46,093 nt of DNA. It comes from Macrostomum lignano. Its lineage: Eukaryota. The stretch is from positions 1 through 46,093 of the forward strand of contig NIVC01004434.1 of NCBI GenBank assembly GCA_002269645.1, written 5' to 3'. The stretch's first letter is position 1. Every line of letters starts with the position of its first letter. The notes beneath the pieces were generated by a model, which had not been told where the DNA came from, did no database searches, and was given only the letters and a program-made list of their open reading frames with translations. The translations under genes were made by a program, and so were the position numbers. Shown here in pieces: positions 2,956-46,093 of this stretch.

Positions 2956-4724
2956 CTACAGAGTCCTCTGACTTCCGCTGGAATTCACGCTGCTCTTTGA
3001 TGTTGCTGAACCCAGCCTTTGTAGACAGGGCATGTAAAAGTAGTAGAATCTTTTCGATAATCCGGCTATGAACAGAGCGTTGGTGTAGTACGGAATGGTG
3101 AACGCGAATGCAGCGAACTTTTCCGTCAGAATAGCTGAAAATGAGAGCGTTGAGTTTGAATGCTGATTGCAATAAAACAGGAAACGGCACGCAAACTGTT
3201 GGTGTTTTACAAAATATTGTAATTTCAGCAAGATACAGTTCCACCAAGACATTTGATACGATTTTCCTGAAAGTTTAAGCACTTATTCATGTCAGTGTAT
3301 TCAGAAACCACTGAAAATAGTGCCGGCCTGGGCAAAATTACATCATCAAAGGTTGAATAGACTATGCAGGAATATATAGGAATTCATGTCAACTTAATGG
3401 TCTCCTTAGTTCCATAGGAGTCAAACCGGTGTTCCGGAGCGACACAGAAGTGATGCCTCTGCTCTCTAGCTAACCACCTGTCGATTGCAGTTGGTTTTGT
3501 CCAGAGCTGTACTTCAGGCTTCATTCTGATGATGCTTCAGCTGACATCCTTTTTTCGTTCATTAAGAGTGGTTAACCGAAAGCAAAATAAAGAGGAATAC
3601 AATGAAATGATAAAAAACAAGCCGGATAGTTATAATAGTAAACTGTATTCGACAACTGTCGACTACTTACACACTTTGTAGTCGTAAAATATGTGTACTT
3701 GAGTGTTGACAACCATGCAGATTCTGGACATCAGGAAGCAGAAAAAGAACGACACGTTCATGCCGAGAAGAATCGCAGTCGCTCGAACTTCATTCTTCTC
3801 GCTCGAATTGTGCGTAGCAACGCCCATTTGTAAACGTTTCCGCTTCGAGTCAAACAGGACAATAATTATGATAACGGATGAGACGAATGTCAATGCGCAG
3901 ATAGTGAATATGATGACAAGCATGATTAAACTGCCAATCGCATGATTGGTCTTATTGGTATTGAAACTAGAGAAGTCCGGTATGCTGCAGCGGCCATAAT
4001 ACCTCCGCCGGCCATCCAGCGTGGTTACTTTGAACGGCCCCAACCATGCGAACGGCTCAATGAGCAGCATGCAGAAAACCAGCGACGCAGCAGCCGAGAT
4101 GCCGGCCGCTAATAGCATCAGGCATCGGTCGCGAAATTTCGTTAGAACAAACTTCGCTTTCAGTGGATACTTGACCGCATAGGTGCGAATCAGTGAGCAG
4201 ATTGTTAGCGCCACCGGTGACAGAATCACTGGGTAGTACAAGATGAAGAAGAATATCTTGCACATTACTTCCTGCAGCTCCTTGTCTTCAGCACGTATCA
4301 GACCCCACATTAGGTACATGAAGTCCATTCCAGGCGTTTCCCTTGAGTCCGGATTGGCGTTTTGGAAGTCCACAGTAATGAGCTCGTACAGTCGATAGAG
4401 CGTGCTGCAGACATCGGCGCTGAGAACGACCAAGAACCAGCTCCTGGCTGACTGTGAGTAGCCCGACTGTCCCCTGACTAGAAAGATTATCGTGAGAATT
4501 TGAAGCAGAAATCCCAGCGGAAATCCAACAGCCTTTACGACGCCAGAGTGATACTCAATATCTCGCTTCAATTCAGTACGCAGAAGGTTGAGAAACCCTC
4601 TATAAATCTTTTCCTCTGGCCAAGTCCCGTTTCTGCGCTGCATCTCAAAAAAAAAATATACCATTTTTAGTATATTGGATTTTGATAAATAAAATCTTCG
4701 GGGAGCTTTATTTATTAAATCCAT
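2956..4724 (-). CDS. Rhodopsin-class (class A) 7TM GPCR, divergent peptide-receptor-like orphan
   Basis: Exon 4724-3671 carries TM1-TM6 (ECL Cys, SLIRTYAVKYPLK at the DRY position, EVRATAILL before TM6) and ends at a GTAAGT donor at 3670 (phase 1). Acceptor TTTTCAG opens exon 3134-2956 (ILTEKFAAFAFTIPYYTNALFIAGLSKRF, TM7). Joined length 1233 nt, about 410 aa. The true start may be the internal MQRRNGTW. Confidence 0.85.
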
Positions 4725-23921: not shown

Positions 23922-26900
23922 GTTGAGCTAAGCCAACCCTCTGGTCCAACACTGGCTGCCACCACCAACACAGCCGTTGGCGTTGTAGGCGGCATGGGCG
24001 CCGCCGCTACCCCGTCTGGCGCCAAACGGGCTAGGCGCGGTCCCCGACCGCACGAACTCGAAGACGAGGACAGCTCACTGTTTGCTATTATCAAGCAGGG
24101 CCGTGGCGCTCTGCAACAGATTGCAGACGAATGGATCCAGCAGTACAAGCAGGATAGAGACGCCGCTCTTGTTAGACTATTGCAGTTTTTTATTAGCAGC
24201 AGCGGCTGCAAAGGTCGCATCACTATGCAGATGTACCTTAACGATAGCTACGCTGAGATTATTCGCAAAATGACGGAACAATTCGACGAGGATAGCGGCG
24301 AGTATCCGCTAATCATGACCGGGCCAGTTTGGCGCAAATTCCGGTCCAGCTTTGTTGACTTCATCACTATACTGATTCGGCAGTGCCAGTATAGCGTCAT
24401 CTATGACCAGTTCATGACTGACACTGTGATCTCGTTGCTAACTGGTTTAACCGATTCTCAGGTGCGAGCATTTCGTCACACAAGCACCCTGGCAGCTGTG
24501 AAGTTAGTCACAGCCCTTGTTGAAGTGTCCTTAAGCGTGTCAATCAATCTTGACAACACGCAGCGTCAATACGACGCCGAACGATTGAAAGCGCAGAATC
24601 GGCGCGCACACGATCGTCTAGACGGCCTGTTAAAGAATCGACAGAAGCTGCAGGAGAATCTTGAAGAGATTAAAACTATGATCACCTACCTGTTCAAAGG
24701 AGTCTTTATCCATCGGTACAGAGACTCGCAGGCCGAGATTCGCACTATTTGCATCCAAGAGATTGGCCAGTGGATGAAAAAGATGCCAAACGTATTCTTG
24801 GAGGATTCCTATTTAAAATACGTAGGCTGGACTCTGTACGATCGAGTGTCGGAGGTTCGATTAACCTGTCTGAAATCGTTGCAGCCGCTCTATGAAGATC
24901 CGAACGCTGTTAACAAGCTGGAGCTGTTCAGCAGCCGGTTTAAATCGCGCATATTAGACATGACGCTAGACAAAGATAGCGAAGTTGCCGTTGAAGCTGT
25001 TCGCTGCGTCACCTGTATGCTGCGCAATCTCGATCGGATTCTTGACGACAAAGACGCCGAGAATATCTACGAGCTAGTGTACTCAAGCCACCGACCGTTG
25101 GCCGTAGCAGCCGCCGAGTTCTTGAATTTGAAACTGTTCCAACTAGACGAACACGCGCCGCAGTTGCGCACTAAGAAAGGCAAAAAGCGCAGCCAGAACA
25201 CTGTGCTATTGCGCGATCTAGTCCAGTTCTTTATTGAGTCCGAATTAAACGAACACGCCGCTTATTTAGTTGATAGTTTCTTCGACATTAACGACATGCT
25301 GCGCGACTGGGAGGCCATGATCGACCTGCTGTTGGAGGAGCCAGGTCGGGGCGAAGAGCCGCTAGGTGATCTGCAGGAATCGTCGCTAATTGAAATTCTA
25401 GCCTGCTGCGCGCGTCAGGCCGCCACTGGCGAAAGTCCGGTTGGTAGGCAGGCCAGTCGGAAGCAGTTGACTAATCGCGAGATGCGACAGGTGCGTCTGA
25501 TGGAGTTGACTTGCAATTGCAGTCGAAATTGGGATTTTTGGGGGATTTTTTACAATTAGGGTGTCGAAATGGGGATTTTAGAGGATTTTTTTACAATTGA
25601 GGTGTCAAAACAAGGATTCTAGGGAATATTTTACAATTAGGGTGTCAAAATAGGGATTCTAGGGAATATTTTACAATTAGGGTGTCAAAATAAAGATTCT
25701 AGGGAATATTTTACAATTAGGGTGTCAAAATGGGGATTCTAGGGAATATTTTACAATTAGGGTGTCAAAATAGGGATTCTAGGGAATATTTTACAATTAG
25801 GGTGTCAAAATAAAGATTCTAGGGAATATTTTACAATTAGGGTGTCAAAATGGGGATTCTAGGGAATATTTTACAATTAGGGTGTCAAAATAGGGATTCT
25901 AGGGAATATTTTACAATTAGAGTGTCAAAATAAAGATTCTAGGGAATATTTTACAATTGGGGTGTCAAAATAGGGATTCTAGGGAATATTTTACAATTAG
26001 GGTGTCAAATAGGGATTCTAGGGAATATTTTACAATTAGGGTGTCAAATAGGGATTCTAGGGAATATTTTACAATTGAGGTGTCAAAATAGGGGTTTTAG
26101 GAGATTTTTTACACTCGCATGTCAACATAGGAACTTTCTTGGGATTGAGATAGACATTTCAAGCATTAATCGTTGATAGTTAAGTGTAAAGTTTAATATT
26201 TTTAGGAATCTTTAACACTATTTTTGTCAAAACTCGACAGGTTTTGATGATATTTGACACCCAATGAGCTTGGCCTGTTTTCTAATCGAACGATCCCTAT
26301 TATTAACTAATGTCTCCAGGTGCAAGAGGACAAGCAGAGGCTAACTGAGCACCTGATTCCAACTCTGGCTCAGCTTATTCTCAAATACGGCGAAGACACA
26401 GGCAAAATGTTAAACCTGCTGTCGCTTGTGCAGTACATGGACTTGGACATGTTCGTTAGCACTCGCCAGGAGAAGCATCTGGACCTGCTGCTCAAGTACA
26501 TGCAGGAGTCCATTGTGAAGCACACTGAAACCGAGGTGCTGCTATCGTTTGCTCGAGTATTCGAGTCCCTAACCCAGGAGGAGCTGCAGATTGGCAGCAA
26601 ATGCCTTGCCGTGCTCAACACCTTGATTGACAGACTAGTAGAATCCTATAAGCAGGCCTATCTCAACTATTTTCAAGAGGAACGACCAGACGAAGACGAC
26701 AAATATGCCCTGCTGTCGGCTTTGAAAAGAATATTTGCATTCTATTCTTATCACGACCTGACCTCGTGGGACCTGTGGATCAGCCTGTTAACCATATTCC
26801 GATCAGCTCAGGAGCGACCGTTCTATTACGAAGAAGTTGTCGCCAGAGGCATCGGCTGCGCCTATTTTGCGCTGTTCTGGCAGCAGTATCGCCAGATGAA

Positions 26901-29741
26901 GGAGGGCCAACCGGATAAAAATGAGCAGAAAGATTTGAAGAAATGCGTTGAGCTGTTTTTTCAGGTACTGCCTTTTTGTTTTTATAGATTGTTTAAGAAT
27001 TCCGAATTTAGGTTACATCTAGTATTACTGATTCTTAGTCAGAAGTAGTATGCATAAATATTTTGTAGCATGCTTCAATCTACAACTTTGTATAACTAAC
27101 ACTTGGGTATCTGCAGTTCAACTCTACCTGATATCTACAGATAGATCAAGAATATCTACAGATAGATCAAGAATATCTACAGATAGATCAAGAATATCTA
27201 CAGACAGATAAAAATATCTACAGATAGATCAAGAATATCTACAGACAGATAAAAATATCTACAGATAGATCAAGAATATCTACAGACAGATAAAAATATC
27301 TACAGATAGATCAAGAAAATCTACAGACAGATAAAAATATCTACAGATAGATCGATAATATCTACAGATAGATCGATAATATCTACAGATAGATCAAGAA
27401 TATCTACAGATAAATCTGAAATATCTACCGTTAGATCTAAAGTATCCACAGTCAGGTCCGGAAACCCGACAGATATATATGGAAATCTATAGATGGATCT
27501 GGAATATCTACAGATAGATCTGAAATATCTACAAATAGATCTGAAGTATCTACAAATAGATCTGAAATATCTACAAATAGATCTGGAATATCTACATATA
27601 CATCCCGAATGTCTACAGGGTAAATCTAGAATATCTACAAGTGGATATATTGTACTATAGCCTAGATCTGTACATAGTCTCATGCCAACCCCTTACCCAC
27701 CTGCAATCAAAGGTGACCACCGCTTACCTGTCGCACGACGAGAAGTCGATAGCAACGGAAGCTTATGTATCAATCTGCGACTTACTAGTGGTGTTTAGCA
27801 GGCACAACGAACCGGCCGTGGCCGGTCAAGCAGGGGATCGACAGCAGCCGGCGGGTGTCGTCTCGTTCGTCGCCGACGCCGGCCTTCAATCCGGTCTGGT
27901 GCACTTCATGCAGCGTCGGGTGTTTGTCGAAGACGACCCCGACACTGACGAGGACGCCAAAATTGAAGAGCTGCACAATCGGCGCACGCACCTGGCCTGT
28001 TTTGCTAAATTAGTCGTCTACAATTGTGTGCCATTACAGTTGGCTAGTAACATGTTTGTGCATTACATTCGGTTCTATAACGATTTCGGCGATATTATGA
28101 AAACTACGCTGCAAAAGTGCAAAGAGATTAACAAACGAGAGACCACTTTGTGCATAGCGGCCACGCTGCAGAAGGCGTTTAGTCAATTGCCGGCTAATTC
28201 CGATCGGGGCTCCCCTGGCTTTGTTGCTCTCAAGGATTTGGCTCGCAGGTTCAATCTGAGCTTCGGTTTGGACGCTGCAAAGGTGAGAATTCGTTATTAA
28301 TATTGACTTGAATACTATAGTGAGTTCACATCTTGAATCTTTTAAGTTCCTATTCCAATTTGTTATTCTGAATCTCGTGTATTTCTGAAGTGCCATTTCA
28401 CACCTTGATTTCGGGTTCCGGTAGTGCCATTTTACACTTGGATTTAGGGTACCGGAAGTGCCATTTCACTCCTGGATTTCGGATACCGGAAGTTCCGTTT
28501 CACTCCTGGATTTCGGATACCTGAACCCGGAAGTTCCATTTCACTCCTGGATTTCGGATACCGGAAGTTCCGTTTCACTCCTGGATTTCGGATACTGGAA
28601 CCCGGAAGTGCCATTTCACTCCTGGATTTCGGATACCTGAACCCGGAAGTTCCATTTCACTCCTGGATTTCGGATACCTGAACCCGGAAGTTCCATTTCA
28701 CTCCTGGATTTCGGATACTGGAACCCGGAAGTTCCATTTCACTCCTGGATTTCGGATACTGGAACCCGGAAGTTCCATTTCACTCCTGGATTTCGGATAC
28801 TGGAACCCGGAAGTGCCATTTCACTCCTGGATTTCGGATACCTGAACCCGGAAGTTCCATTTCACTCCTGGATTTCGGATACCTGAACCCGGAAGTTCCA
28901 TTTCACTCCTGGATTTCGGATACCAGAACCCGGAAGTGCCATTTCACTCCTGGATTTCGGATACCGGAAGTTCCATTTCACTCCTTGATTTAGGATACTG
29001 GAAGTGCCATTTCACACCTGGATTATCTCAATCAATCCATCCAATACCCCTCCCCTCCCCCAGGTCCGCGAGCTCATGCGCTGCCTACACGAGGAGGGCG
29101 TCAAATTCGCGCTGGCCGACTGGGACCCGGCATCGCCGGCCGCAGCCGCCCCGCCGCACAATCTCGCCTTCTTCGACGTGCTAGCGGAATTCTCGAACAA
29201 ACTATTGCGCGAAGACAAGGCCCAGCTGGCTCAATGGTTGCGCACCGGTTGGCAGGTCCGCACTAACGGCCTTGGTCCGCAATGGCAGAGTTTGATTTAT
29301 TACCTGTCATCTTTGGAGAGCCCCGACGGCGGCGGCGCTGAAGGTTCGATCAGCGGAGCGACTGGTTCGGTTGTTGGCGGCGGTCCCGGCCGGGGCTCCG
29401 GACAACGCGGACGGCCGAAACGTCAGCGAGACTCGTCCATGACGCCATCGATGGGCGGCGGGCAAGGACAGGCATCGGCCGTTGCGCCGAGCCCCGGAGC
29501 CACTGCGGCTGCGGCTGCGGCGGCGTCAACGTCCATCCAGTCGGCGGCGGGCGCCGGCGGGCCGCAGGCGGTGTCAACCGCAGTGAAACGCTCCCGCCGA
29601 GATCAGATGATGCCGCCGGCAGGAAATCTGGCCACTCCGGCTTCTACTTCCGGTCAGCAGCAGCCGCCGCAGTCGCACGGCCCGACAACCTCGGTGCTGC
29701 AGCTTCGGTCGCATCAGCAGTTCCTGGCCGGTGGCCTATGA
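23922..29741 (+). CDS. STAG1: Cohesin subunit SA/stromalin (STAG family; invertebrate co-orthologue of STAG1/2/3)
   Basis: Exons 23922-25490, 26320-26964, 27713-28282, 29064-29741, all phase 0 GT-AG, total 3462 nt. STAG/SCD motifs: FDEDSGEYPL, DSQVRAFRHTSTLAA, FIHRYRD, YLKYVGWTLYD, ARQAATGESPVGR, ALKDLARRFNLSFG, PPHNLAFFDVLAEFSNKLL. Start codon unresolved: upstream exon, trans-splicing, or ATG 23994. Confidence 0.95.
25545..26115. repeat. 40-bp minisatellite in STAG intron 1 with 120-bp higher-order period
   Basis: TTACAATTAGGGTGTCAAAATAGGGATTCTAGGGAATATT; the variable position cycles TAGG/TAAA/TGGG. Confidence 0.95.
27130..27640. repeat. 21-bp minisatellite in STAG intron 2
   Basis: AATATCTACAGATAGATCAAG units, degenerating 3'. 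Confidence 0.92.
28390..29015. repeat. 41/34-bp minisatellite in STAG intron 3, with CCGGAAGT (ETS consensus) in each core unit
   Basis: CCATTTCACTCCTGGATTTCGGATACCTGAACCCGGAAGTT; 14 copies of CCGGAAGT counted from 28452 to 28964. Confidence 0.95.
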
Positions 29742-30683
29742 TTAGATTCTTGTAGCTTTATTCGGTCCATCTTGTGTTTGTAGCTTACTGTCAGTTTGCT
29801 GTTGTATTTCTTATATATTCGCCCTAAATCTCCCTTGGAAAATAAATCGCTTGTATTCAATTGGCGGTTTTGTTTGTTCTTGTTTGTTTGTTTTTTTAAT
29901 GCATACATACATTTAGGCCTCTATTATAATGTTCTTGTACTAATAACAATACGTATTTTCAAAATAGTTAGTTAGCGCGGATTCTAACCTTTGCTGGCGC
30001 CTTCAGGTAAATTTTTTTCTTATTATAATTCACTTTATCACCGAATAACCTCAATATGCTACTTTCCTTGCTAAGATAGTCTAGTAGTCAGCTGGAGAAA
30101 TTAAGGTTATAATTACAATTACAGCCAGTAAGTAATAAATCAGTGTTTACTATTGCTAACTAACTACTAATGAGTAGGAGATACGCCTTCTAAAATGTGT
30201 GCGTGAAACGTTTATCCTGTTGGCTTCTCTATGTGTCTCTGTGTCTCTTGCGTCATGTCATGGCAGCTCGATTTTTGTAAGCCCAGTGTCAGTTTGCGCG
30301 TCTGTTTAAAATATATGATTATATATATGTAATAAGTATACTAATCATGAATATTATTGCTTAGCTATTAATGTGTTTGTAGGTATATTTCACCTGCCTG
30401 CCCCTTTATTATCATTTTGTAATTTATCTTATTTCACCTGATCGATTAAAATTCTTACCAGCTACTATTAATAGTACTATTGCACTACTTACAGTAGCGA
30501 TATATTAGCAAAATTGAAGACTGCTAACTTTGTTGTGTTCTTTAGTCAGGTTTTTTAATGTTGGCTTGGCTAACTCTGAGCGCTTCTTAATCAGGTAACA
30601 AATAGCTTATTGATTGTTAACTTTTTTCAAAAGAATAATTTCTGTTGCATCAAACAAGTGTAGGAGTTTGGTAATCGGTTAGT

Positions 30684-31094
30684 GTTTCCATAGCAACCAG
30701 AGTTTCTATAGCAACTAGGGTTCTCTCAGCAACGGAGTGTTTCCATAGTAACCCTAGAGTTTCTATAGCAACTAGGGTTCCCTCAGCAACGGAGTGTTTC
30801 CATAGTAACCCTAGAGTTTCTATAGCAACTAGGGTTCTCTCAGCAACGGAGTGTTTCCATAGTAACCCTAGAGTTTCTATAGCAACTAGGGTTGTCTCAG
30901 CAACGGAGTGTTTCCATAGTAACCCCAGAGTTTCTATAGCAACTAGGGTTCCCTCAGCAACGGAGTGTTTCCATAGTAACCCCAGAGTTTCTATATCAAC
31001 TAGGGTTCCCTCAGCAACGGAGTGTTTCCATAGTAACCCCAGAGTTTCTATATCAACTAGGGTCCCCTCAGCAACGGAATGTTTTCATAGCAAT
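30684..31094. repeat. 57-bp tandem repeat made of three X-box-like subunits
   Basis: Unit starts at 30727, 30784, 30841, 30898, 30955, 31012, 31069. Subunits GTTTCCATAG(C/T)AAC, GTTTCTATAGCAAC, GTTCCCTCAGCAAC. Confidence 0.95.
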
Positions 31095-31143
31095 GACTTT
31101 TCTGTCCTCATATTTTGGCAGATAGTCGCCCTCGTACATATGA

Positions 31144-31157
31144 GTTACCATGGCAAC
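31144..31157. promoter_or_regulatory. Near-palindromic RFX X-box GTTACCATGGCAAC
   Basis: Exact match to the canonical X-box, 50 bp past the X-box array. Confidence 0.55.
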
Positions 31158-32100
31158 TAGTGCGCGAAATGCCTATACAAAGCATAACAGCATTAATAAG
31201 CCTGTCGGTCTGCCTGTGTTACTAAAATATTAAATTCAAACTAATTAAATGCAGTGTGTTGCACATTAGGATTGCTTATAAATGTGTACAAATTGGCCAT
31301 TTTTATAATGTTTGTTTTTAATTAATTAGAAAACTAATGTTTTCTCAGCTATTTAAGGTTGATGAATTTTTCCGCTCTCCGCGTCTGCAGCTACTAAAAT
31401 TACTACTACTTAGCCAGCAGTAGTATGATTAGCAATGTACATACGGTGTTTATTTATACGCGCTATCTAGAAGAATCATGTGCTCTGCTTGTACCAACGT
31501 TTGTTGTATTTCTATGATTTTATCGTCATATAATTTTTTAAACATAACTTAATCGCCTAAATTTTCTATATCAGGCCCGAAAGTATCGATAGTAAAAGGC
31601 ATGCTAAATTTGGCATATTCTGTACATTGCTGTCAACTCCCCACGAATTTTCCTCTCACTTTTATTGTCCCTAAAATTTACCCCTGTTTTCTAAATTCCC
31701 GTGCGGAATAACAAACTTAATAATAATTGAATTTTTATAATTCAAACTGAATGCCCCCCAATGCCGAATCATTAATCAAATTTTGCTGCTGCAGACTCTA
31801 ACATTTTTTAAATTCGTTGAAATTCATACATAATTAATAATTAAATGCATATACATGTTAATATTAATAATGTGTTTAAAAATATAAAAGCCCCCAAACT
31901 TGTGGGCACGCGTGTTCTCTGGCTCTGTTTCTTTTAAAAACAAATTTACAAAATTTAACAAAGAATTGCTTGTCTTTTGTCTTTTCATCGGCGTGTTGTT
32001 AGATTGTTAGATAGGCCTGATCGTATTTGTTGTCAGTTAGTGTCGTCACTTATAGTGTTCAGGTAGATCATGACAATCCGTTTTTGACTTAATTTTCTAT

Positions 32101-33170
32101 GTTGCTGCTGACAAATCTTCTGACAAAGTTGATTCTGACAATGTTGATTCTGACAATGTTGATTCTGACAATGTTGATTCTGACAATGTTGATTCTGACA
32201 ATGTTGATTCTGACTATGTTGATTCTGACAATGTTGATTCTGACCAATCTTCTGACAGTGTTGATTCTGACCAATCTTCTGACAGTGTTGATTCTGACAG
32301 TGTTGATTCTGACCAATCTTCTGACAATGTTGATTCTGACAATGCTGATTCTGACAATGTTGATTCTGACAATGTTGATTCTGACAATGTTGATTCTGAC
32401 CAATCTTCTGACAGTGTTGATTCTGACAGTGTTGATTCTGACCAATCTTCTGACAATGTTGATTCTGACAATGCTGATTCTGACAATGTTGATTCTGACA
32501 ATGCTGATTCTGACAATGTTGATTCTGACCAATCTTCTGACAATGTTGATTCTGACCAATCTTCTGACAATGTTGATTCTGACCAATCTTCTGACAATGT
32601 TGATTCTGACAATGTTGATTCTGACCAATCTTCTGACAATGTTGATTCTGACAATGTTGATTCTGACCAATCTTTTGACAATGTTGATTCTGACAATGTT
32701 GATTCTGACCAATCTTCTGACAATGTTGATTCTGACAATGTTGATTCTGACCAATCTTCTGACAATGTTGATTCTGACCAATCTTCTGACAATGTTGATT
32801 CTGACAATGTTGATTCTGACCAATCTTCTGACAATGTTGATTCTGACCAATCTTCTGACAGTGTTGATTCCGACCAATCTTCTGACAATGATGATTCTGA
32901 CAAATCTTCTGACAATGTTGATTCTGACCAATCTTCTGACAGTGTTGATTCCGACCAATCTTCTGACAATGATGATTCTGACAAATCTTCTGAGAATGTT
33001 GATTCTGACAAATCTTCTGAAAATGTTCAGTCTGACAATGTCAAACCTGATCGACAAAGTTGGTTCTGACAATTTTTCTAACAATTTCAATTCTGACAAA
33101 AAAGATTCTGAAAATTGATTTTGACAACTTCGATTCTGACAATTCGTATGACAATGTTGATTCTGACAAA
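32101..33170. repeat. 15/24-bp minisatellite (GTTGATTCTGACAAT with TCTTCTGAC inserts)
   Basis: Direct reading; unit lengths are multiples of 3, which explains the long open frames on both strands. Confidence 0.95.
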
Positions 33171-33505: not shown

Positions 33506-36500
33506 ATGTCCTCTCGCCTTGTATTCGGCGGTCAGCCGCTGCTAACGGGTGGCTGTTTAGTCCCTAGCAACAGTGGTACAGTTGCCGTGCTCACCAGTCG
33601 AGGCGCCGCAGTACTGTCTCTGGATTTTGATCCCACCTGGGAAGGAGACGAACCCGTCGGTGAAGCTGGTGGCAACGGGTTAAGCCGGAGCGATTGCGAA
33701 GTGGCCAACTGTAGCGAAGGGTTCAGCTTTCGGCTCACCTGTTGGGCGTCATTACGGGACAGGTAAAAGTATATTTAGACTGCGACACCATCAAAATCCC
33801 TGATCTCTAACACGACAAAATCCCTGATCTCTAACACGACAAAATCCCTGATCTCTAACACCCAAAATTTCTGAATATCTAACACCCCAAGATCCCTGAT
33901 CTCTAATACCCAAAATTTCTGAATATCTAACACCCCAAGATCCCTGATCTCTAATACCCAAAATTTCTGAATATCTAACACCCCAAGATCCCTGATCTCT
34001 AATACCCTAAGATCCCTGATCTCTAACACCGCAAAATCCCCGAATATTTAGCACCCCAAAATCATTTAATATCCCCAAAATCCCTGAATATCTAACACCC
34101 CAAAATCCCTGAATATTTAACACCCCAAAATCATTTAATATCCCCAAAATCCCTGAATATCTAACACACCGAAATCCCTGAAAATCTAACACCCCAAAAA
34201 TGTCCTATCTCTAACGCCCCTAGCCATATAACTCGGATTTCTAATACGGACATAACCACGATCTCTAACACCCAGGCCCTTTTTCCCAATCTCTTACCCC
34301 CTAGCCATATATCTCTAGCACCATCAGCCTATTATTCCCAAACTTTCTATCTCCCTCATTCACATCTCCGCAGGTTCCGCCTACCTCTAGCCATCGATCC
34401 GGAAGTGATCGAATCCGGCAAGCATCTCCCCAACCCTCTACGCGATCCTCTGCGCGCATTTCACTCGCTAGCTCGGCGATTCCCGTCGGCTACTGTCGTT
34501 GCCGACTCTGACGCAGACGGCGAAGGATTGCTAACAGCGCCGCCAGCTTCAAAGTCCATCTCGGACAGTTTCATCAAAGCCGATTGGTCGCCATTCGAAC
34601 AGTTCGGACGTCCGTGTTTAGCCGCAGTGTCCGATTCTGGCCGGTTAGTTTTATTATCCAATCGGAGATGCCTGTTAGAATCGGAATCTATGGCATTGGT
34701 GAGCCCGGAACCTGGCAGTCTATGGTGCAAAGCCTATGTTCAAACTGGTCGAGTTGTGCAACCGCCGGGTCAAGGTGGCGACGGGCCTGCTACCGATTTG
34801 AACTTTCTCATGCCTGGCGCCGGCGCTGCCGCTATGGACTCGGATGGTGGCACCGACAGCAGCAGCAGCAGCTACATCTGGTGCGATCAGATGGACGAGT
34901 TCGCTTTGGCCGTTATGGACATGTGCTTTGTTGGCGTCAGCTGGTCTCGGTGAGCCTAAGGCTTTTTTGTTTTCTCAAATCGTGTTTTTGCTTTTGGCTT
35001 TATTGTATCCTTTAGCTTGTCTATATCTGTTTGCCACGGGCGGCGCTCTATTATGAAACTCTTCTGCCTCTCTTTCTCCTTTGCCTAATCTTCGAATTTT
35101 TGCACTGTAACATCACCATGAACCTCCTCTTCATCTCGTCTCTACTTGCGCTCTTCCTCCCCAACATCCCCACTCTCTTTCCCACGACACTATCCCACTC
35201 TCCCTCTCTCCATCTCCCACTCTCCATTTCCCACTCTCCCTCTCTCCCACTCTCACTCTCCCCCTCTCCCACTCTCCATTTCCCACTCTCCCTCTCTCCC
35301 ACTCTCACTCTCCCACTCTCCCCCTCTCCCACTCTCCCCCTCTCCCACTCTCCCCCTCTCCCACTCTCCCCTCTCCCACTCTCCCCCTCTCCCACTCTCC
35401 ATTTCCCACTCTCCCTCTCTCCCACTCTCACTCTCCCACTCTCCCCCTCTCCCACTCTCCATTTCCCACTCTCCCCCTCTCCCACTCTCCATTTCCCACT
35501 CTCCCCTCTCCCACTCTTTATTTCCCACTCTCCCCCTCCCCCACTCTCCATTTCCCACTCTCCCCCTCTCCCACTCTCCATTTCCCACTCTCCCTGTCCC
35601 ACTCCCTCTCCTACTCTCCCACTCTGCCTCTCCCACTCTCCCTCTCCCACTCTCCCTCTCCCACTCTCCCTCTCCCCACTCTTCCATTCTCCAACTCTCC
35701 CTCTCCCACTCTCACTCTCCCACTCTCCCCCTCTCCCACTCTCCATTTCCCACTCTCCCCCTCTCCCACTCTCCATTTCCCACTCTCCCCCTCTCCCACT
35801 CTTTATTTCCCACTCTCCCCCTCTCCCACTCTCCATTTCCCACTCTCCCTGTCCCTCTCCCACTCTCACTCTCCCACTCTCCCCCTCTCCCACTCTCCAT
35901 TTCCCACTCACCCCCTCTCCCACTCTCCATTTCCCACTCTCCCTGTCCCACTCCCTCTCCTACTCTCCCACTCTGCCTCTCCCACTCTCCCTCTCCCACT
36001 CTCCCTCTCCCACTCTCCCTCTCCCCACTCTTCCATTCTCCAACTCTCCCTCTCTCCCTCTCCCCACTCTTCCATTCTCCAACTCTCCCTCTCCCACTCT
36101 CACTCTCCCACTCTCCCACTCTCCCTCTCCCCACTCTCCCATTCTCCAACTCTCCCTCTCCCCACTCTCCCATTCTCCAACTCTCCCTCTCCCACTCTCA
36201 CTCTCCCACTCTCCCACTCTCCCACTCTCCCTCTCCCCACTCTCCCACTTTCCCCACTCTCCCATTCTCCAACTCTCTCTCTCCCACTCTCACACTCTCC
36301 CTCTCCCACTTTCCCATTCTCCCGCCGCTATCCCTCTCCCACTCTCCCACTCTCTCACTCCCTCTCCCACTTTCCCATTCCCCAGTCTCCCTCTCTCCCT
36401 TTCTAATTATTCTTCCCATTCTACGTGTAGCTTGCAATATGACTTTCATTTGTCACTCCCTATCCAATGTTATATCGACTAAAAATCCCTGTTACAAAAA

Positions 36501-39500
36501 TGTTCCAATCCCCGTACACTCTACTATCAATAGGCAGATGCGAGCACAGCCTTGGCACGCACTACTAGCAGGCGTTACCCGTTCCGGCGTTCTAGTACTA
36601 TTTAGCTACAATCCCGGCGCTAAAACTGCCACCCTGTTGTACGCAACCTACGCGTGCGCTATCGGCGGCGGTCTCACCAGTTTATCCTCTGCGTCAGCCA
36701 ACGGTCTGCCATCGCCCAGTACTCTTGCCAACTTCGGTTTGCAAGCTTGTTCACTGAAAATCTGCGATCTGTTGTCTAGTAATGCTACTAATACTACTGC
36801 CGCATCGGACGGTGTCAGTAGTATTTGTAGCGACAGTCTGTTAGCTTTAATTGGCCTGTGCGATGGTCGCGTATTTGGTGTTAAAATTCGATTAGAAAGT
36901 AGTACAGCTGAGACTGCAATAGTGATATCCGCTGGTCCGGAGTGGCGTCTTTGGCGATGGCCAGATCAGTTGCAACCGTTTGATGCTGTCTGGTCGGCTA
37001 CCAATCAGTTCGGTTGCGTTGCTAAGGGCGCTCATTTGGTTAGCTTTGCGTTGCGAAGGTGAGTAACTGATTTGTTTGGTGTTTAGTGATTTAGTCTCAA
37101 GGTGCGATCTCTGGGGTATTTAGTCTCAAGGTGTGATCTCTGTGGGGTATTTAGTCTCAAGGTGTGATCTCTGTGGAGTATTTAGTCTCAAGGTGTGATC
37201 TCTGTGGGGTATTTAGTCTCAAGGTGTGATCTCTGTGGGGTATTTAGTCTCAAGGTGTGATCTCTGTGGGGTATTTAGTCTCAAGGTGTGATCTCTGTGG
37301 GGGATTTAGTCTCAAGGTGTGATCTCTGTGGGGTATTTAGTCTCAAGGTGTGATCTCTGTGGAGTATTTAGTCTCAAGGTGTGATCTCTGTGGGGTATTT
37401 AGTCTCAAAGTGTGATCTCTGTGGAGTATTTAGTCTCAAGGTGTGATCTCTGTGGGGTATTTAGTCTCAAGGTGTGATCTCTGTGGAGTATTTAGTCTCA
37501 AGGTGTGATCTCTGTGGGGTATTTAGTCTCAAAGTGTGATCTCTGTGGAGTATTTAGTCTCAAGGTGTGATCTCTGTGGGGGATTTAGTTCCATGTTGGG
37601 ATATTTATTCTCAAGGTGTGATCTCTGTGTAAAAGATATTTATATTTTTCCACTAAAGAATTTTCTACTAAAGAGTATCATGTGCCGACCCGCCGGCTTT
37701 CATTGCTAATAAAGCACTTGGTGTACTGTTGCCACTCACCCAGACCCGAAGGCATCGCAGCCAGCACAGTAACTACCAGCGTTAATTGCCTACAAATCAC
37801 TGGCATGTCCTGTATTGGCAATTCTGTCTACTATTGCTGCCTAGATGGTCGCCTATACTGTGCTACATTTGCTCCCGATACTACTAATATTGGCGGTGGA
37901 GGAGTAGTCTGTACGAGCATATCGGAATTGCAGTTGAACGCTGGGCCAACAAATAAACTGGTTGAGCCGAATGCTATGCCTTATTACGGTTTGTATTGTT
38001 CGAGAAATGGCGTAATTTTAGGCGTGCTGGAAGGTCGGCCAGATACTACTGTTAGTAAGCAGCGAGCGATAGGCCATTTGGCGTTTCGATTGATGTGCTC
38101 AGTTGGAGAGGATAGGCTTGTTGGTGAGAACCGTTATTCTGATTTTTTACTGATCAATTTTATACAGACAGCTACATACTACATTACGAGTTATAGCTAC
38201 ATCACAGACGCTAGAATAACTGAATATCTCACTCGCAATTAAAGTTCTGAAAAAGCAGAGAATCTAGCTACTCCTAATCAGTAGTTTGTCTGCGCAGTGT
38301 CACTTAAATTTAATAATTTGGCAGCTAAAACTTCCTTTTCCCCGGCGTTTGCGGACTCAGGACCATATGGAGTTAGGAATGAACAACAAACATGTAACTA
38401 TATGTTACACAAGTGAATGCCAGACGGAGGAAAAGCCCTCCCCACTCTAGACTTGAGGGCACAAAAAACCCTAGACTTGAGGGCCCTATCGAGCAGGCCC
38501 ATCTGGATCAGCCAATGAGAGAGCGGTAAGGAGAGAGGTCAAAGTTAAGACGGACAAAACTCAGCCTATGGGGCAGGCCCAATCTGGCTCAGCCAATGAG
38601 AGAGCAGTAAGTAGAGAAAGCCAAGGCGACAAACTTGCCTAGGGGTAGGCCCAATCTGGCTCAGCCAATGAGAGAGCAGTAAGGAAGGAGAGAGGTCACA
38701 AGGGGGCAAGAGAAAGGCCTACTGTTTATTGTTTACGACAAGCTTACGATTTACGATGTTTACGATGGGCGTCGCTGGGGTCTGGCCCTTCTCTCTTGCC
38801 TGGATTTTAATGATTTCCTGTCATTTTTAGTCTTACATTTCTTTTCAAATAATTTCGAGTAGTAAAGCGGTCTCGAGTCGGAAAACAGGATGAAGATGCA
38901 AATTTAATAGGTCTACTTGCAAAAACCATAGGCTATTGTTGTAGCTTCAAAAACTTTACATATCTTGTAAAGTGAAATACATTTTAAATCTCACAGGAAA
39001 ACGATAATTTTGCTACTAGCTCGTATAAAGGAGTAAAAACGCATCTTTTGCGAGTAAAAATATCTAGTTCTTCTAGTATTTGTGAAATTTCCTTGATCAA
39101 GTGATCATCCACGACCCCCCCCTCCAATTGGGTTGGCAGAGCTGCTCCGCAGTAGCGATCAACCGCTCAGTCAAAAACTCGACGTACTCGAAGCAGTTCG
39201 CCACGTCTATTATCGCGACAAGTTCACATCGGCAAGTTTTCTTAGCGCGGAACTGGCCAGTCTAACGGATATTATGCGCAATCCGACAACTCTGGTTGCC
39301 CTTGGCAACGATGCTCATAATCTGCGCCTATTAAGATTTCTGCTATCGCTGGCTGGCGGCCAAGCTGCCAGAGCTATGACCAGAGCGGCTGAGGGTCTCA
39401 TGCTGATGAAGCATTGCGGTATAGCTTTGAGGCAGCTGTGCAGGATTGCCCAGGGAGATGAGGGCGGTGAGTGTGCAGTTTGCTCTTTGTTACTCAAACA

Positions 39501-40324
39501 CAACTTCACTCTCTCCTTCACTCTCTCCTTTAATCACCCTTCAATCTCTCTCCTTCACTCTCAACCTTCACTCTCACCCCTTCAATCTCATCCTTCTCTC
39601 TCACCTCTTCACTCTCACCTCTTCACTCCTTCAATCTCATTCTTTCCCTCTCGCCTCTTCACTCTCACCTCTTCACTCTCACGCCTTCACTCTCACTCTT
39701 TCATTCTCACCCCTTCACTCTTTCCTCCAACCTTTTCTTTCTGGCTTTCATTCGCCCACCACAATTCGCCGTCTCACAGGTAAGCCGCAGCAACTCAAGC
39801 GACAATTAAGCGGTCGCGATCTGCGCGCCGCAGCCTGCATGTTAGACGCTTTACGCCGCGCTTGCGCCGCTAATCCGCGCGTGTTAGGCGCCGCTAGAAC
39901 CGCCTGGCGCCTAGACGCTATCATAAACCGAGCAGCTGGTCTGCTTTCGCAGCAAAAGCAACAACAGCAACAGCCGACGTCAGAACAGCCACAATGGGAG
40001 AACTGCGTTATCTGCTTCTCTAAATGGACCGATCCGCCATTCGAAACGGCGGCTACAGTTGCTATGGATCCTCTAGTTGGCGTCTGCTGTCCTAATGGTC
40101 ACGTGTTCGCTCGCTGCTGCCGCAGCCTAATCCCCGTGACAAGTTCGGACGGATTCCTAATCTGCACTACTTGCCTGGCCTATTGCCTGCAGGATACTGG
40201 CGGCAATAACAGTACTAGCGATGGGTCTGTTTCGCAGCCAAATAACGATTGGCTAGGCCGGTTGCTTAGCAACGATGTCTGCCTGTTTTGCGATTCGCCA
40301 ATGGTGCCGGTTCGATGTGTCTGA
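33506..40324 (+). CDS. GTF3C4: General transcription factor IIIC subunit 4 (TFIIIC90/delta), about 869 aa
   Basis: Exons 33506-33762, 34374-34949, 36534-37058, 37744-38123, 39140-39466, 39780-40324; phases 2/2/2/1/1; total 2610 nt. Motifs VAVLTSRGAAVLSL and FIKADWSP..GRPCLAAVSDSGRL. C-terminal zinc finger CVIC...CPNGHVFARCCRS...CTTC...CLFC. Confidence 0.88.
33785..34275. repeat. 24-bp minisatellite (alternating variants, 48-bp period) in GTF3C4 intron 1
   Basis: CCCCAAGATCCCTGATCTCTAATA alternating with CCCAAAATTTCTGAATATCTAACA. Confidence 0.9.
35170..36410. repeat. Pyrimidine-rich CTCCCACTCTCC-type low-complexity repeat in GTF3C4 intron 2
   Basis: About 1.2 kb almost free of G on the + strand. 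Confidence 0.95.
37088..37630. repeat. 31-bp minisatellite in GTF3C4 intron 3
   Basis: GGGGTATTTAGTCTCAAGGTGTGATCTCTGT, about 17 units. Confidence 0.95.
38490..38690. repeat. Three dispersed direct repeats carrying CCAAT boxes in GTF3C4 intron 4
   Basis: AGGCCC(A)ATCTGG(A/C)TCAGCCAATGAGAGAGC(A/G)GTAAG near 38495, 38575 and 38647. Confidence 0.8.
39505..39720. repeat. CT-rich CTCTTCACTCTCAC-type repeat in GTF3C4 intron 5
   Basis: Direct reading. Confidence 0.85.
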
Positions 40325-41030: not shown

Positions 41031-41656
41031 ATCAGGATAGCTTACACTAGCCATTTGTTTGTACTTTTTCAGTCCGTCTGTTTTTAAACATTACGGAGAT
41101 AGTAGGTTTTTATTTTTTTCAGCACAAAAAATGTTATTTCTTTTAAGAGAAGTGAGACCCAGTGTTCATCTTTTGATATGCCTTGTATTTCTTATAGCTC
41201 TTATGGATAGTCATGAAGCTTTTCGTTTAGAAAATTAGGATTATATGTTTATCTTATACCCTGCGTACGTACATGCCCTATACCTAGAAATCATGAGAAT
41301 TGAATTGCACCAACTAATTGATTTCAGAACTCTTTTTATTATTCTGTTACACAGTCATTAAGATAAGAATGATAAAATAGATTTCATAAAACCAATGCGT
41401 CCAGCTGTGTGACACTGTGTCATTTTTATGATTTTAGGTACAGTACATTTACGATGTACTTGTACTTGTACGTAGGATATAAAATTAACATAGAATCCTA
41501 ATTTTCTAAACAAACAAATCCTTGATTTCAGCTCAATAGTCTTTAATCCCACTTCTAACCATGTCTAATATTAAATCAGAATGTGTCATATTTATTAACA
41601 CGGCAATTAAATACATTGATAGTTGATACCTATTGGTGTTGGTTGTCTTTCCAGAA

Positions 41657-44600
41657 ATGCAGACCAATTGCGACTTGTTACAACAGCACAGTCGCCTACA
41701 AGCGGACAAATCCGGCTGTCTGCAAGTACTAATAGGCAAAGACTCCGCTGGCGAATCTGGCGGCTCAAAATCTGATAAAAAATTGTCTTCCAAATCTGCA
41801 TCAAACAAATCTAGCGACGCTTGCATATGCCGCCTAGTCGGCAATTTATTATTTGTTACTAAAGGCATCGACCCGTTGGCGCAGGACTGCGACTATCTTA
41901 TTGTGCTAGAGGCTTGCAAAATTGAAGTCGACTATTCGCCAGCAAATGTCGAAGCAGATTATCCATTCAGATTAGTGTTTGACTACGAAAGTCAGACTGT
42001 ACTATTTCGAGCCGCCAGCGAAGAGGACCGCGGCGCTTGGGTTGCCGCCTTTCGCGAGGCGTCAATATTCGATAAATTAGACTTAGCCGAATCTGCCAGA
42101 CAAAATATTATAGATATTACTGGCCAGGATCCGTTGGAGCCAACTCTGATTGAAGCCGAAGTTGATGCCACTGTTGTGGATGCCAATGCTGCTGGTTCAT
42201 TTTCGGGATGGCCAACTAAAATTAATGAAGAATCTTTCACTACGGAATCTGCTGGCACTGATCCTGCCGCTACTTCTAATGCTGGAGGCCTCGAACTTGA
42301 TTTGTCGTTGCGCTGTTTGCCAGCTTTGACAGCAGATCCCAGCCTGCAGTATCCCAACGCGTACGTTGAAGTGCACGCGTGTACACCTCCGCTACAGTCG
42401 GACTGGAGCCTCGTCGGTCGGACTGATGTTGTTGAGAATAGCGATCGGCCCATGTTTCGCAAAGTGGTAGGACTGTGTTTATTTTAACTGGAGGTAGCTT
42501 AATCCAGTAGCTTAGCCAGTTATTCAGTTAGTTAGTTAGTCAGTTAGTTAGTTAGTCAGTTAGTTAGTTAGTGAGTCAGTTAGTTAGTTAGTTATTCAGT
42601 TAGTTAGTTAGTTAGTCGGTTAGTTAGTCAGTCGGTTAGTTAGTTAGTCAGTCAGTCAGTCAGTCAGTTAGTTAGTCAGTCAGTCAGTCAGTCAGTCAGT
42701 CAGTCAGTCAGTCAGTCAGTCAGTCAGTCAGTCAGTTAGTTAGTTAGTCAGTTAGTTAGTTAGTTAGTCAGTTAGTTAGTTAGTAAGTCAGTTAGTTAGT
42801 TATTCAGTTAGTTAGTTAGTTGGTTAGTTAGTTAGTCGGTTAGTTAGTTAGTCAGTCAGTCAGTCAGTCAGTTAGTTAGTTAGTCAGTTAGTTAGTTAGT
42901 CGGTTAATTAGTTAGCCAGCCAGTCAGTCAGTCAGTCAGTCAGTTAGTTAGTCAGTCAGTTAGTTAGTCAGTCAGTTAGTTAGTCAGTCAGTTAGTTAGT
43001 CAGTCAGTTAGTTAGTCAGTCAGTTAGTTAGTCAGTCAGTCAGTCAGTCAGTTAGTTAGTCAGTCAGTTAGTTATTTAATTAGTTAGTCAGTCAGTTAGT
43101 CAGTCACTTAGTTAGCCAGTCAGTTAGTCAGTTAGTTAGTCAGTCAGTCAGTTAGTTAGTTAGTTAGTCAGTCAGTCAGTTAGTTAGTTAGTTAGTCAGT
43201 TAGTCAGCTAGTTAGTTAGTTAGTCAGTTACTTAGTCAGTTAGTTAGCCAGTCAGTTAGTCAGCCAGTCAGTTAGTTAGATCAGAATATTCTAAAGTGTT
43301 TATAGAAAGTTAGCCCATTGTACTTAGACATGTACATCCTACACTGCCTTAGAGGGTTGGTCATTATCGCAAAAAACGTGACAAACCCCAGGGCATATTC
43401 GCATATGCAGACATTAAAATTGCTTTTCATCCATAAAATTGCAACCATAAAATCTCACGCCAAATTCATCAAGGTGGTCATTCCCGATGGACAATACAGC
43501 GAAGACTCCACAGAACTAATATTCGACGTTTTCGACGTTCGCGATCAGATTAGTCGTACAATGCGCAAGCTGTACTCTGTTCAGGCCGCTTTAAAACAGT
43601 TGCGAGGCAATCCCGAGCTGTCGTTATTGGCTGCAACTTCTGACACTCAAGCAGCTGTGGTGCCTGCCAACCAACAGCCCACTCTGACTGTGCAAATGCG
43701 CGTGTGAGTGCCTGTGTATGTTTGTGAACGATGTATGTGTTTAGTTTTCGGATTAGACAGCTGCCTGTCTATGAGTCATAGATCATGAGTCATCAAATCA
43801 TCTGTTTGGTTTATGAGGGTCAGCTGGCAAAGGAGTTCTGGGTCAGGGCTAAGAGGTTTTTAGTCAGGGATAAGGGGTTCTGGGTTAGGGCTAATGGGTT
43901 TTGGGTCAGGGCTAAGGGTTTTGGGTCAGGGCTAAGGAGTTTTGTGTCAAGGCCAAGAGGTTTTTGGTCAGAGCTAAGATGTTTTGGGCCAGGGCTAAGG
44001 GTTTTGGGTCAGGGCTAAGGGTTTTGGGTCCGGGCTAAGGGTTTTGGGTCATGGCTAAGGGCGTTTGGGTAAGGGCAAGGGTTTGGGTCAGGGCAAGGGG
44101 TTTGTGTCAGGGCAAGGGGTTTGGGTCAGGGCAAGGGGTTTGTGTCAGGGCAAGGGTTTGGGTCAGGGCAAGGGTTTGTGTCAGGGCAAGGGTTTGGGTC
44201 AGGGCAAGGGGTTTGTGTCAGGGCAAGGGGTTTGGGTCAGGGCAAGGGTTTGTGTCAGGGCAAGGGTTTGGGTCAGGGCAAGGGGTTTGGGTCAGGGCAA
44301 GGGGTTTGGGTCAGGGCAAGGAGTTTGGGTCAGGGCAAGGGTTTGTGTCAGGGCAAGGGTTTGGGTCAGGGCAAGGGTTTGGGTCAGGGCAAGGGGTTTG
44401 TGTCAGGGCAAGGGGTTTGGGTCAGGGCAAGGGGTTTGTGTCAGGGCAAGGGTTTGGGTCAGGGCAAGGGGTTTGTGTCAGGGCAAGGGGTTTGGGTCAG
44501 GGCAAGGAGTTTGGGTCAAGGCTAAGGGGTTTTGTGTCAGGGCTAAGGGGTTTTGTGTCAGGGCTAAGGGGTTTGGGTCAGGGCTAAGGGGTTTGGGTCA

Positions 44601-45450: not shown

Positions 45451-46093
45451 AGTACTATGTTGAGATAATTTATGATTAGGATCGTGAGTTGATCTCTATA
45501 TGATGAAGACTTATGAATAAAATTACAGACAAATAAATTGAGCTTTAACAGTAGGAATACCAAGCCATTTTACCGCCCGTCGAACTACCAAGAGGGGGGG
45601 AATCCCCCCCCCCCTGACAATTTTATTTTGCTGCGCCGGAACGGAGCAACGCAGGCACCTAAAATTCAAGAACACGGGCCAACTTTTATTGCGCACCTTC
45701 TCAAACAAAAATCAGGTCGCCAGCCCTCCGGTCCGTCGAGATATTCGACGATTTCGCCAGAAGGTCGGATTTTGAGATCCTGTTGCAACTATGTCAGATT
45801 TTTCTTATCAAGCTTCAATAATGGACAAACTTTAACTCCTGGTCATTCTCAGCTAGACTCTCAAACAGCCTATCATCACCCAACGTGATGACGTAAACGT
45901 GATGACGTAATTAGTTAATTGAACCGAATTTTCGGCAGGAGAAAAAATATAAAAAGTATCAATTTGTTGTATGGACTCAAGATCAAGTAAAAGTAACTAA
46001 AATTGCTAAAAAAATAAAAAAACTTCTTAGCTTTTGGGTGTCTATAGTCCTGTTTTTGTCCTCTTGAAGGTACCGAGACGTCGGGTGATGACA

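Follow-up and report, generated by a model that had tools for sequence, protein, structure and literature searches.

RFX/DAF-19 X-boxes such as those of the C. elegans xbx, bbs, osm and che genes, or of human DCDC2 and DYX1C1, are 14-bp imperfect palindromes that typically occur singly or in pairs, 60-285 bp ahead of the ATG of a ciliary gene. The same palindrome is present in the Macrostomum lignano contig analysed here (hereafter the window, 46,093 bp), where it forms 12 tandem boxes plus one isolated box that lie between housekeeping genes and at least 2.3 kb from a start codon. How such an array arose, and whether its density of boxes reflects a regulatory function or is simply the product of repeat growth, is the question considered here.

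Architecture of the tandem array

Tandem Repeats Finder (period 57, 96% matches, no indels) delimits a minisatellite of 410 bp at 30681-31090, between the cohesin gene STAG and a GTF3C4-like gene, that comprises 7.2 head-to-tail copies of a 57-bp unit; the unit lies within the usual 10-100-bp minisatellite range and is confined to this one locus within the 46 kb window, whereas the term satellite in the original prediction would imply long arrays and/or many loci. Each 57-mer consists of three related subunits, A (20 bp, GTTTCCATAGTAAC followed by CCYAGA), B (18 bp, GTTTCTATAGCAAC followed by TAGG) and C (19 bp, GTTCYCTCAGCAAC followed by GGAGT), and GTT-N8-AAC boxes recur at spacings of 18, 19 or 20 bp to give 21 subunits and a decayed 22nd at 31081. 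The boxes of A and B are identical at 12 of 14 positions, and those of A and C and of B and C at 10 of 14, indicating that the three subunits are homologous.

The A-type box, GTTTCCATAG(C/T)AAC, is present seven times, with C in one copy and T in six: the variant GTTTCCATAGCAAC forms the first copy (30684-30697), and GTTTCCATAGTAAC is found at 30739-30752 with further copies starting at 30796, 30853, 30910, 30967 and 31024. Five B-type boxes GTTTCTATAGCAAC (30702-30715, then starting at 30759, 30816, 30873 and 30930) are accompanied by two decayed variants, GTTTCTATATCAAC, starting at 30987 and 31044. The seven C-type boxes (30720-30733, then starting at 30777, 30834, 30891, 30948, 31005 and 31062) are GTTCCCTCAGCAAC in three cases, GTTCTCTCAGCAAC in two and GTTGTCTCAGCAAC and GTCCCCTCAGCAAC in one each; they keep only the right half-site AGCAAC and have TC in place of the central AT. 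The 3' edge of the array is formed by a decayed terminal A-type copy, GTTTTCATAGCAAT, at 31081-31094 (13.2 bits by the scoring described below). Both the 57-bp unit of three approximately 19-bp subunits and the motif counts of the original prediction (seven A, five B plus two variants, seven C and a lone box at 31144) are reproduced exactly by Tandem Repeats Finder and by a print-out of the sequence in register.

Sequence variants within the array are distributed in blocks. The A spacer is CCTAGA in units 2-4 and CCCAGA in units 5-7, and a TATC variant is restricted to units 6-7; such possession of common variants by adjacent units is a signature of block duplication, and the adjacent identical blocks and decayed edge conform to the pattern left by slippage or unequal exchange. 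Three units treated as single-stranded DNA fold better than shuffled sequences (z=-3.0), which is compatible with slippage.

Resemblance to validated X-boxes

To compare the boxes with known RFX sites we built a position weight matrix (PWM) from 30 validated 14-bp C. elegans X-boxes (PMC3245922, Table 1), for which leave-one-out scores have a median of 17.7 bits and quartiles of 16.7 and 19.7, and scored every 14-mer of the window. The isolated box GTTACCATGGCAAC (31144-31157) scores 22.3 bits, above all 30 of the validated C. elegans sites. The A variant at 30684 (20.8 bits) exceeds 29 of the 30, and is identical to the X-box of the human DCDC2 promoter, for which an EMSA probe was supershifted by antibodies to both RFX1 and RFX2 (PMC5024701), whilst the standard A box (18.6 bits) and the B box (17.9 bits) each exceed 17. 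The B variant GTTTCTATATCAAC falls to 11.8 bits and loses its match to the consensus; C-type subunits, at 6.8-9.7 bits, are at background, with about seven sites of 9.7 bits or more expected by chance per window. The highest-scoring unrelated site in the window reaches 13.1 bits. If an X-box is taken to be a 13-15-bp imperfect inverted repeat, GTNRCC-N(0-3)-RGYAAC or GTHNYYATRRNAAC, whose PWM score falls among those of validated sites, then the A, B and isolated boxes qualify, and the C-type subunits and the B variant do not.

As originally predicted, 13 sites match the consensus GTHNYYATRRNAAC exactly; all are at this locus, with none in the rest of the 46 kb, and with up to two mismatches allowed the window contains 25 matches against 1.1 expected. 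Thirteen sites of at least 17.9 bits within 474 bp constitute, at the level of sequence, a dense cluster. The estimate of about 21 tandem boxes needs to be revised: the array does contain 21 GTT-N8-AAC subunits, but there are 12 strong boxes in the array and one isolated box, because the C-type subunits score at background and two B variants have dropped to 11.8 bits. The C-type subunits are not X-boxes. The DNA-binding domain of RFX proteins is highly conserved, making it very likely that the A, B and isolated boxes would bind RFX in vitro.

This resemblance is not coincidental. Given the base composition of the window, 0.0008 sites of 22.3 bits or more are expected in 46 kb, 0.0004 minisatellite units of 17.9 bits or more are expected over all array units in the window, and 3e-6 sites of at least 22.3 bits are expected within 100 bp of the array, so that the isolated box and the array must be linked by descent or by function. 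The 13 sites nevertheless represent one or two independent events, since the remainder were made by tandem duplication.

How the isolated box relates to the array

The isolated box lies with its flanks (GA and TAG) at 31142-31160, and is separated from the array by a 47-bp stretch (31095-31141) without similarity to the repeat unit, local alignment to the unit scoring 10 against a shuffle mean of 11.6. Upstream of the array no decayed repeat was found, the sequence there giving no alignment to the unit. Alignment of the isolated box and its flanks (GAGTTACCATGGCAACTAG) to subunit B (GAGTTTCTATAGCAACTAG) gives 16 identities over 19 positions, a score equalled by none of 2000 shuffles. Of the 11 flanking positions taken alone, 6 agree (p=0.03 before and approximately 0.1 after correction for the three subunit types), and the flank-only homology to subunit B is weak. 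Across the window, similar stray copies of the respective unit occur in the flanks of about 4 of 14 arrays.

The scores provide an indication of direction. At most 0.4% of the derivatives of an array-type box would drift to 22.3 bits, whereas the isolated box yields two-step derivatives that retain at least 16.7-17.9 bits in 9-18% of cases; it is accordingly the likelier of the two to be ancestral-like.

Gene neighbourhood

STAG, which encodes the cohesin subunit SA, is identified by its Pfam STAG and SCD domains and occupies large exons between 23916 and 29741 on the forward strand; its best database matches, which are 65-70% identical, are from trematodes and then a mollusc. The last coding exon lies in an open reading frame at 29004-29741 (+) with its stop codon at 29739-29741, and is followed by AATAAA signals near 29842 and 30133. 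The array begins 940 bp downstream of this stop codon. On its other side is the GTF3C4-like gene, identified on the basis of a zf-TFIIIC exon at 39446-40324 (+). An exon at 33506-33762 (+), with an ATG at 33506 and a GT donor at its end, is probably the first coding exon of this gene, to judge from strand and order; the start at 33506 is assigned from features of the sequence itself, since the putative 5' exons (33506-38242) gave no Pfam match even at E<=10. A database search with the zinc-finger exon gave no relative at E<=1e-5, and the gene is very divergent. Its ATG is approximately 2.35 kb downstream of the isolated box and 2.4 kb from the array, which agrees with the position originally given (about 1 kb past STAG and 2.4 kb before GTF3C4). 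Elsewhere in the window we observed a single-exon rhodopsin-family GPCR reading frame of 353 aa at 3663-4724 (-), for which an exact look-up gave no match, a PH-domain exon at 41633-42487 (+) and, near the window end at 45882-45910, a doubled CRE-like sequence, AACGTGATGACGTA.

Neither coding nor structured-RNA features accompany the boxes: 29975-32089 contains no open reading frame of 60 aa or more outside the arrays, and an Rfam search near the boxes returned no credible match. The distance rule that relates X-boxes to the ATG is looser in vertebrates, and is a weaker guide outside nematodes. At this locus the nearest start codon is at least 2.3 kb from the boxes and they are not promoter-proximal, compared with 60-285 bp from the ATG, and in one case 767 bp, for validated C. 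elegans X-boxes (PMC3245922). The adjacent genes, encoding a cohesin subunit and a GTF3C4-like protein, are housekeeping rather than ciliary.

Tandem arrays elsewhere in the window

Tandem arrays are abundant in this region. The window contains 17, accounting for 24% of its bases, and at least six have higher-order periods comparable to the 3 x 19 = 57 bp seen here. Most introns of STAG and GTF3C4 hold a minisatellite, which in STAG nearly fills the intron (25522-26113, 27131-27639 and 28387-29024; for GTF3C4, 33792-34199, 35188-36404, 37089-37589, 38485-38683 and 39504-39724), and an unrelated minisatellite with 15/27/42-bp periods occupies 32099-33169 of the same intergenic gap. An array at this position consequently needs no functional explanation. 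The intron minisatellites suggest a habit that is striking and genome-wide, and which might reflect the way these introns grow or arose. Two further repeats were seen close to the window start: a 15/32-bp array of TTTCGCCGATTCTCA at 1-1144, which runs off the window and has a short inverted partial copy approximately 300 bp downstream (1455-1531), and an interstitial telomere-like (TAACCC) run of 5.5 copies at 2352-2387.

The X-box array shares with ordinary minisatellites its unit size, 96% identity, higher-order periodicity, block-shared variants, decayed edge and stray copy, and the other 16 arrays of the window display several of these features. It differs in that its unit carries two validated-grade sites for one identifiable transcription factor, a far higher specificity than that of the short motif cores in the arrays nearby.

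Tests for selection on the boxes

If the boxes were maintained by selection, box positions would be expected to vary less between copies than spacer positions, as had been proposed as a check. No such difference was found: within the array, variation affects 7 of the 42 columns in boxes and 3 of the 15 in spacers (Fisher p=0.71), and the boxes are not spared. The G-to-T change in column 10 that breaks the consensus in the B variant is present in two adjacent units, and hence the broken box was itself amplified. In subunit type C, one third of all subunits, the central AT and with it the box has been lost.

Some features point the other way. Columns 6 and 11 are the only ones that distinguish the A box from the B box, and the consensus tolerates both changes. 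Each of these boxes is three positions removed from the isolated box yet still has a validated-grade score, which is retained by only 2.2% of random triple substitutions of the isolated box and by 15% of triple transitions. Both features would fit purifying selection, but are suggestive at best, since two of the three changes are common to A and B by descent. The original view that the spacers had diverged whilst the GTT...AAC frame was kept concerns very few positions and is only suggestive. At 96% identity, the array may not be old enough for internal variants to reveal selection in either direction.

X-box pairs and arrays in other contigs

The 57-bp unit itself had no match among the metagenome contigs or prokaryotic genome contigs searched. 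A generalised pattern of two X-boxes, in which a spacing of 17-22 bp was imposed by the search, retrieved 65 metagenome contigs (L001-L065) against approximately 0.01 expected for random sequence. Among them are short tandem X-box arrays with periods of 18-22 bp and 2-5 copies, for example at 484-582 of L047 and at 578-682 of L055, the latter a 22-bp x 4.5 array whose contig also encodes a Ty3/gypsy-type reverse transcriptase and integrase. Pairs of X-boxes are found, too, on contigs with piggyBac-type transposase reading frames (L044, 2504-2534; L026, 2329-2359; L010, 7828-7858), at a distance of approximately 500 bp from the reading frame in L044 and L026. Multiplication of X-boxes by repeats is therefore not unique to the window.

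Two observations from this set stand somewhat apart. Contigs of the JAAUXW and JAAUYA series (e.g. L063, L064 and L046) contain a dispersed family in which two X-boxes precede CRE palindromes, its conserved core consisting of GTTTCCATGGYAAC, six bases, GTTGCCATGGCAAC, a run of A and then several TGACGTCA (CRE) palindromes. The family resembles a promoter module carried by a mobile element; spermatids are a site of action of both RFX2 and CREM, and one idea is that the family is expressed in the germline. In L007, three GTTTCCATAGTAAC boxes, identical to the subunit A 14-mer, lie at 309-388, approximately 600 bp 3' of a homocysteine S-methyltransferase gene; the likeness to the window array is limited to the boxes, the contig being unrelated.

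Discussion

The reading that we favour, with moderate confidence, is that the array is a young, locus-specific minisatellite that was seeded from a duplicate of one high-affinity RFX X-box and has since evolved neutrally. A seed of approximately 19 bp would have arisen by duplication of a single high-affinity X-box, which would survive as the isolated box at 31144; this seed would first have been triplicated, its copies then diverging into subunits A, B and C, and the resulting 57-bp unit would next have been amplified some seven times by replication slippage or unequal exchange. The boxes would on this model be present through inheritance by copying, rather than through selection on each, and any regulatory effect of the array would be incidental, very probable though RFX binding to the A, B and isolated boxes is from their sequences. 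We infer the direction of seeding, the mechanism of amplification and neutrality from several features taken together, namely the frequency of arrays in the window, the block-shared variants, the lack of box sparing, the duplication of a broken box, the loss of the C box, the 16/19 alignment of the isolated box with subunit B, the stray copies at other arrays, the folding of the units and the distance to any gene start. Retention of validated-grade A and B boxes, the weak flank homology, the non-aligning 47 bp and the possible youth of the array weaken the neutral reading.

A possible but rather unlikely alternative is that the locus is a functional cluster of RFX sites, i.e. an enhancer or alternative promoter built from repeats, at which RFX dimers would occupy the 12 strong boxes and the isolated one in ciliated or germ cells, which would drive GTF3C4, STAG or an unannotated transcript, and whose output would be tuned by copy number. 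The density of validated-grade boxes, one of them identical to a site proven to bind RFX1/2, is what such a cluster would provide, as is the presence of the top-scoring box of the window within 100 bp of the array, and the confinement of A/B differences to tolerated columns is also in its favour. Synthetic reporters with three tandem X-box variants, arranged head-to-tail as here, suffice for expression in C. elegans, although this is often weak (bioRxiv 10.1101/2021.02.03.429678); those constructs were engineered directly upstream of a reporter, whereas the window array is natural and intergenic, and half-sites alone, which are all that the C-type subunits keep, gave no expression in the worm. 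Genes with more than one X-box (C. elegans F25B4.2, yeast RNR and human MAP1A; PMC3245922) likewise carry boxes of differing strength, through which expression is tuned and for which combinatorial effects have been proposed, but their boxes are two or a few non-repeated, conserved sites in promoters or first exons, and in no case form a tandem array of recently duplicated copies. Against a functional cluster are the housekeeping neighbours, the distance of at least 2.3 kb to any start codon with no reading frame or RNA family nearer, the behaviour of the boxes within the array (not spared, lost from a third of the subunits and amplified when broken) and the ubiquity of arrays in the window. 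For the roles proposed originally, as super-enhancer, promoter or sink, the evidence within the array is neutral to negative. The stronger proposition, that minisatellite dynamics have turned one ancestral X-box into a natural RFX platform of variable copy number, whose 12 sites form an enhancer or alternative promoter and are occupied by RFX in ciliated or germ cells, we regard as doubtful.

It is improbable that the array is left over from the regulatory region of a mobile element (for instance an LTR, or a transposon promoter in which X-boxes were repeated) whose coding parts have since been lost. There are precedents for X-boxes multiplied by repetitive DNA, in the gypsy-linked array, piggyBac-linked pairs and dispersed X-box/CRE family described above, whose short arrays have periods (18-22 bp) corresponding to the subunit length, and in the RFX motifs amplified by SINEs in pigs (PMC10471783); Helitron derivatives, moreover, can consist largely of minisatellites (PMC12001565). 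However, some of those sets share a contig with gypsy- or piggyBac-type genes or form a dispersed family, and the window array bears no transposon signature: neither flank (29742-30680, 31091-32098) recurs in the window or contains terminal repeats or a transposon reading frame, and on these grounds a transposon origin of the locus was rejected. The absence of the 57-bp unit from the contigs searched is a further argument against such an origin, and the likeness to the 65 contigs is that of the box itself only.

We consider it very unlikely that the X-box likeness is fortuitous and that another factor, or none, recognises the repeats. Any minisatellite multiplies the motifs that its unit happens to contain, as illustrated by the 13 T-box half-sites (AGGTGTGA) of the 31-bp array at 37089-37589 and the 35 SOX cores (ACAATG) of the array at 32099-33169, and hundreds of motifs are recognisable to a reader. 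Those cores, however, are of 6-8 bp, compared with boxes of 18-22 bits here, and both the chance expectations given above and the identity of one box with a proven RFX site argue against coincidence.

Least probable of all is a copy-number-tunable sink that would titrate RFX away from ciliary promoters: tandem decoys, whose units each carry a high-affinity transcription-factor site as here, do sequester an activator and sharpen its dose-response in yeast, where a plasmid with 6-7 sites also had a measurable effect (Lee and Maheshri 2012, PMC3322331), but the main effects in that synthetic tetO system were obtained with 67-240 sites, and 12 sites at one locus, with no other copy of the unit in 46 kb, are few beside the hundreds of promoters with candidate X-boxes in an animal genome (for C. 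elegans a figure of 730 candidate targets is given; PMC3245922).

Returning to the neutral minisatellite, its significance would lie in offering a clean example of how minisatellite growth can turn one transcription-factor site into a dense cluster. Such clusters are raw material for new enhancers, and a caution for scans that rely on motif clusters in repeat-rich genomes. In the literature we found no description of a natural X-box array; should RFX occupy this one, it would be, as far as we could find, the first of its kind on record, and its repeat number would offer a natural means of varying the dosage of RFX sites. More generally, X-boxes may be a motif that is recurrently captured and multiplied by repeats and mobile elements in invertebrate genomes.
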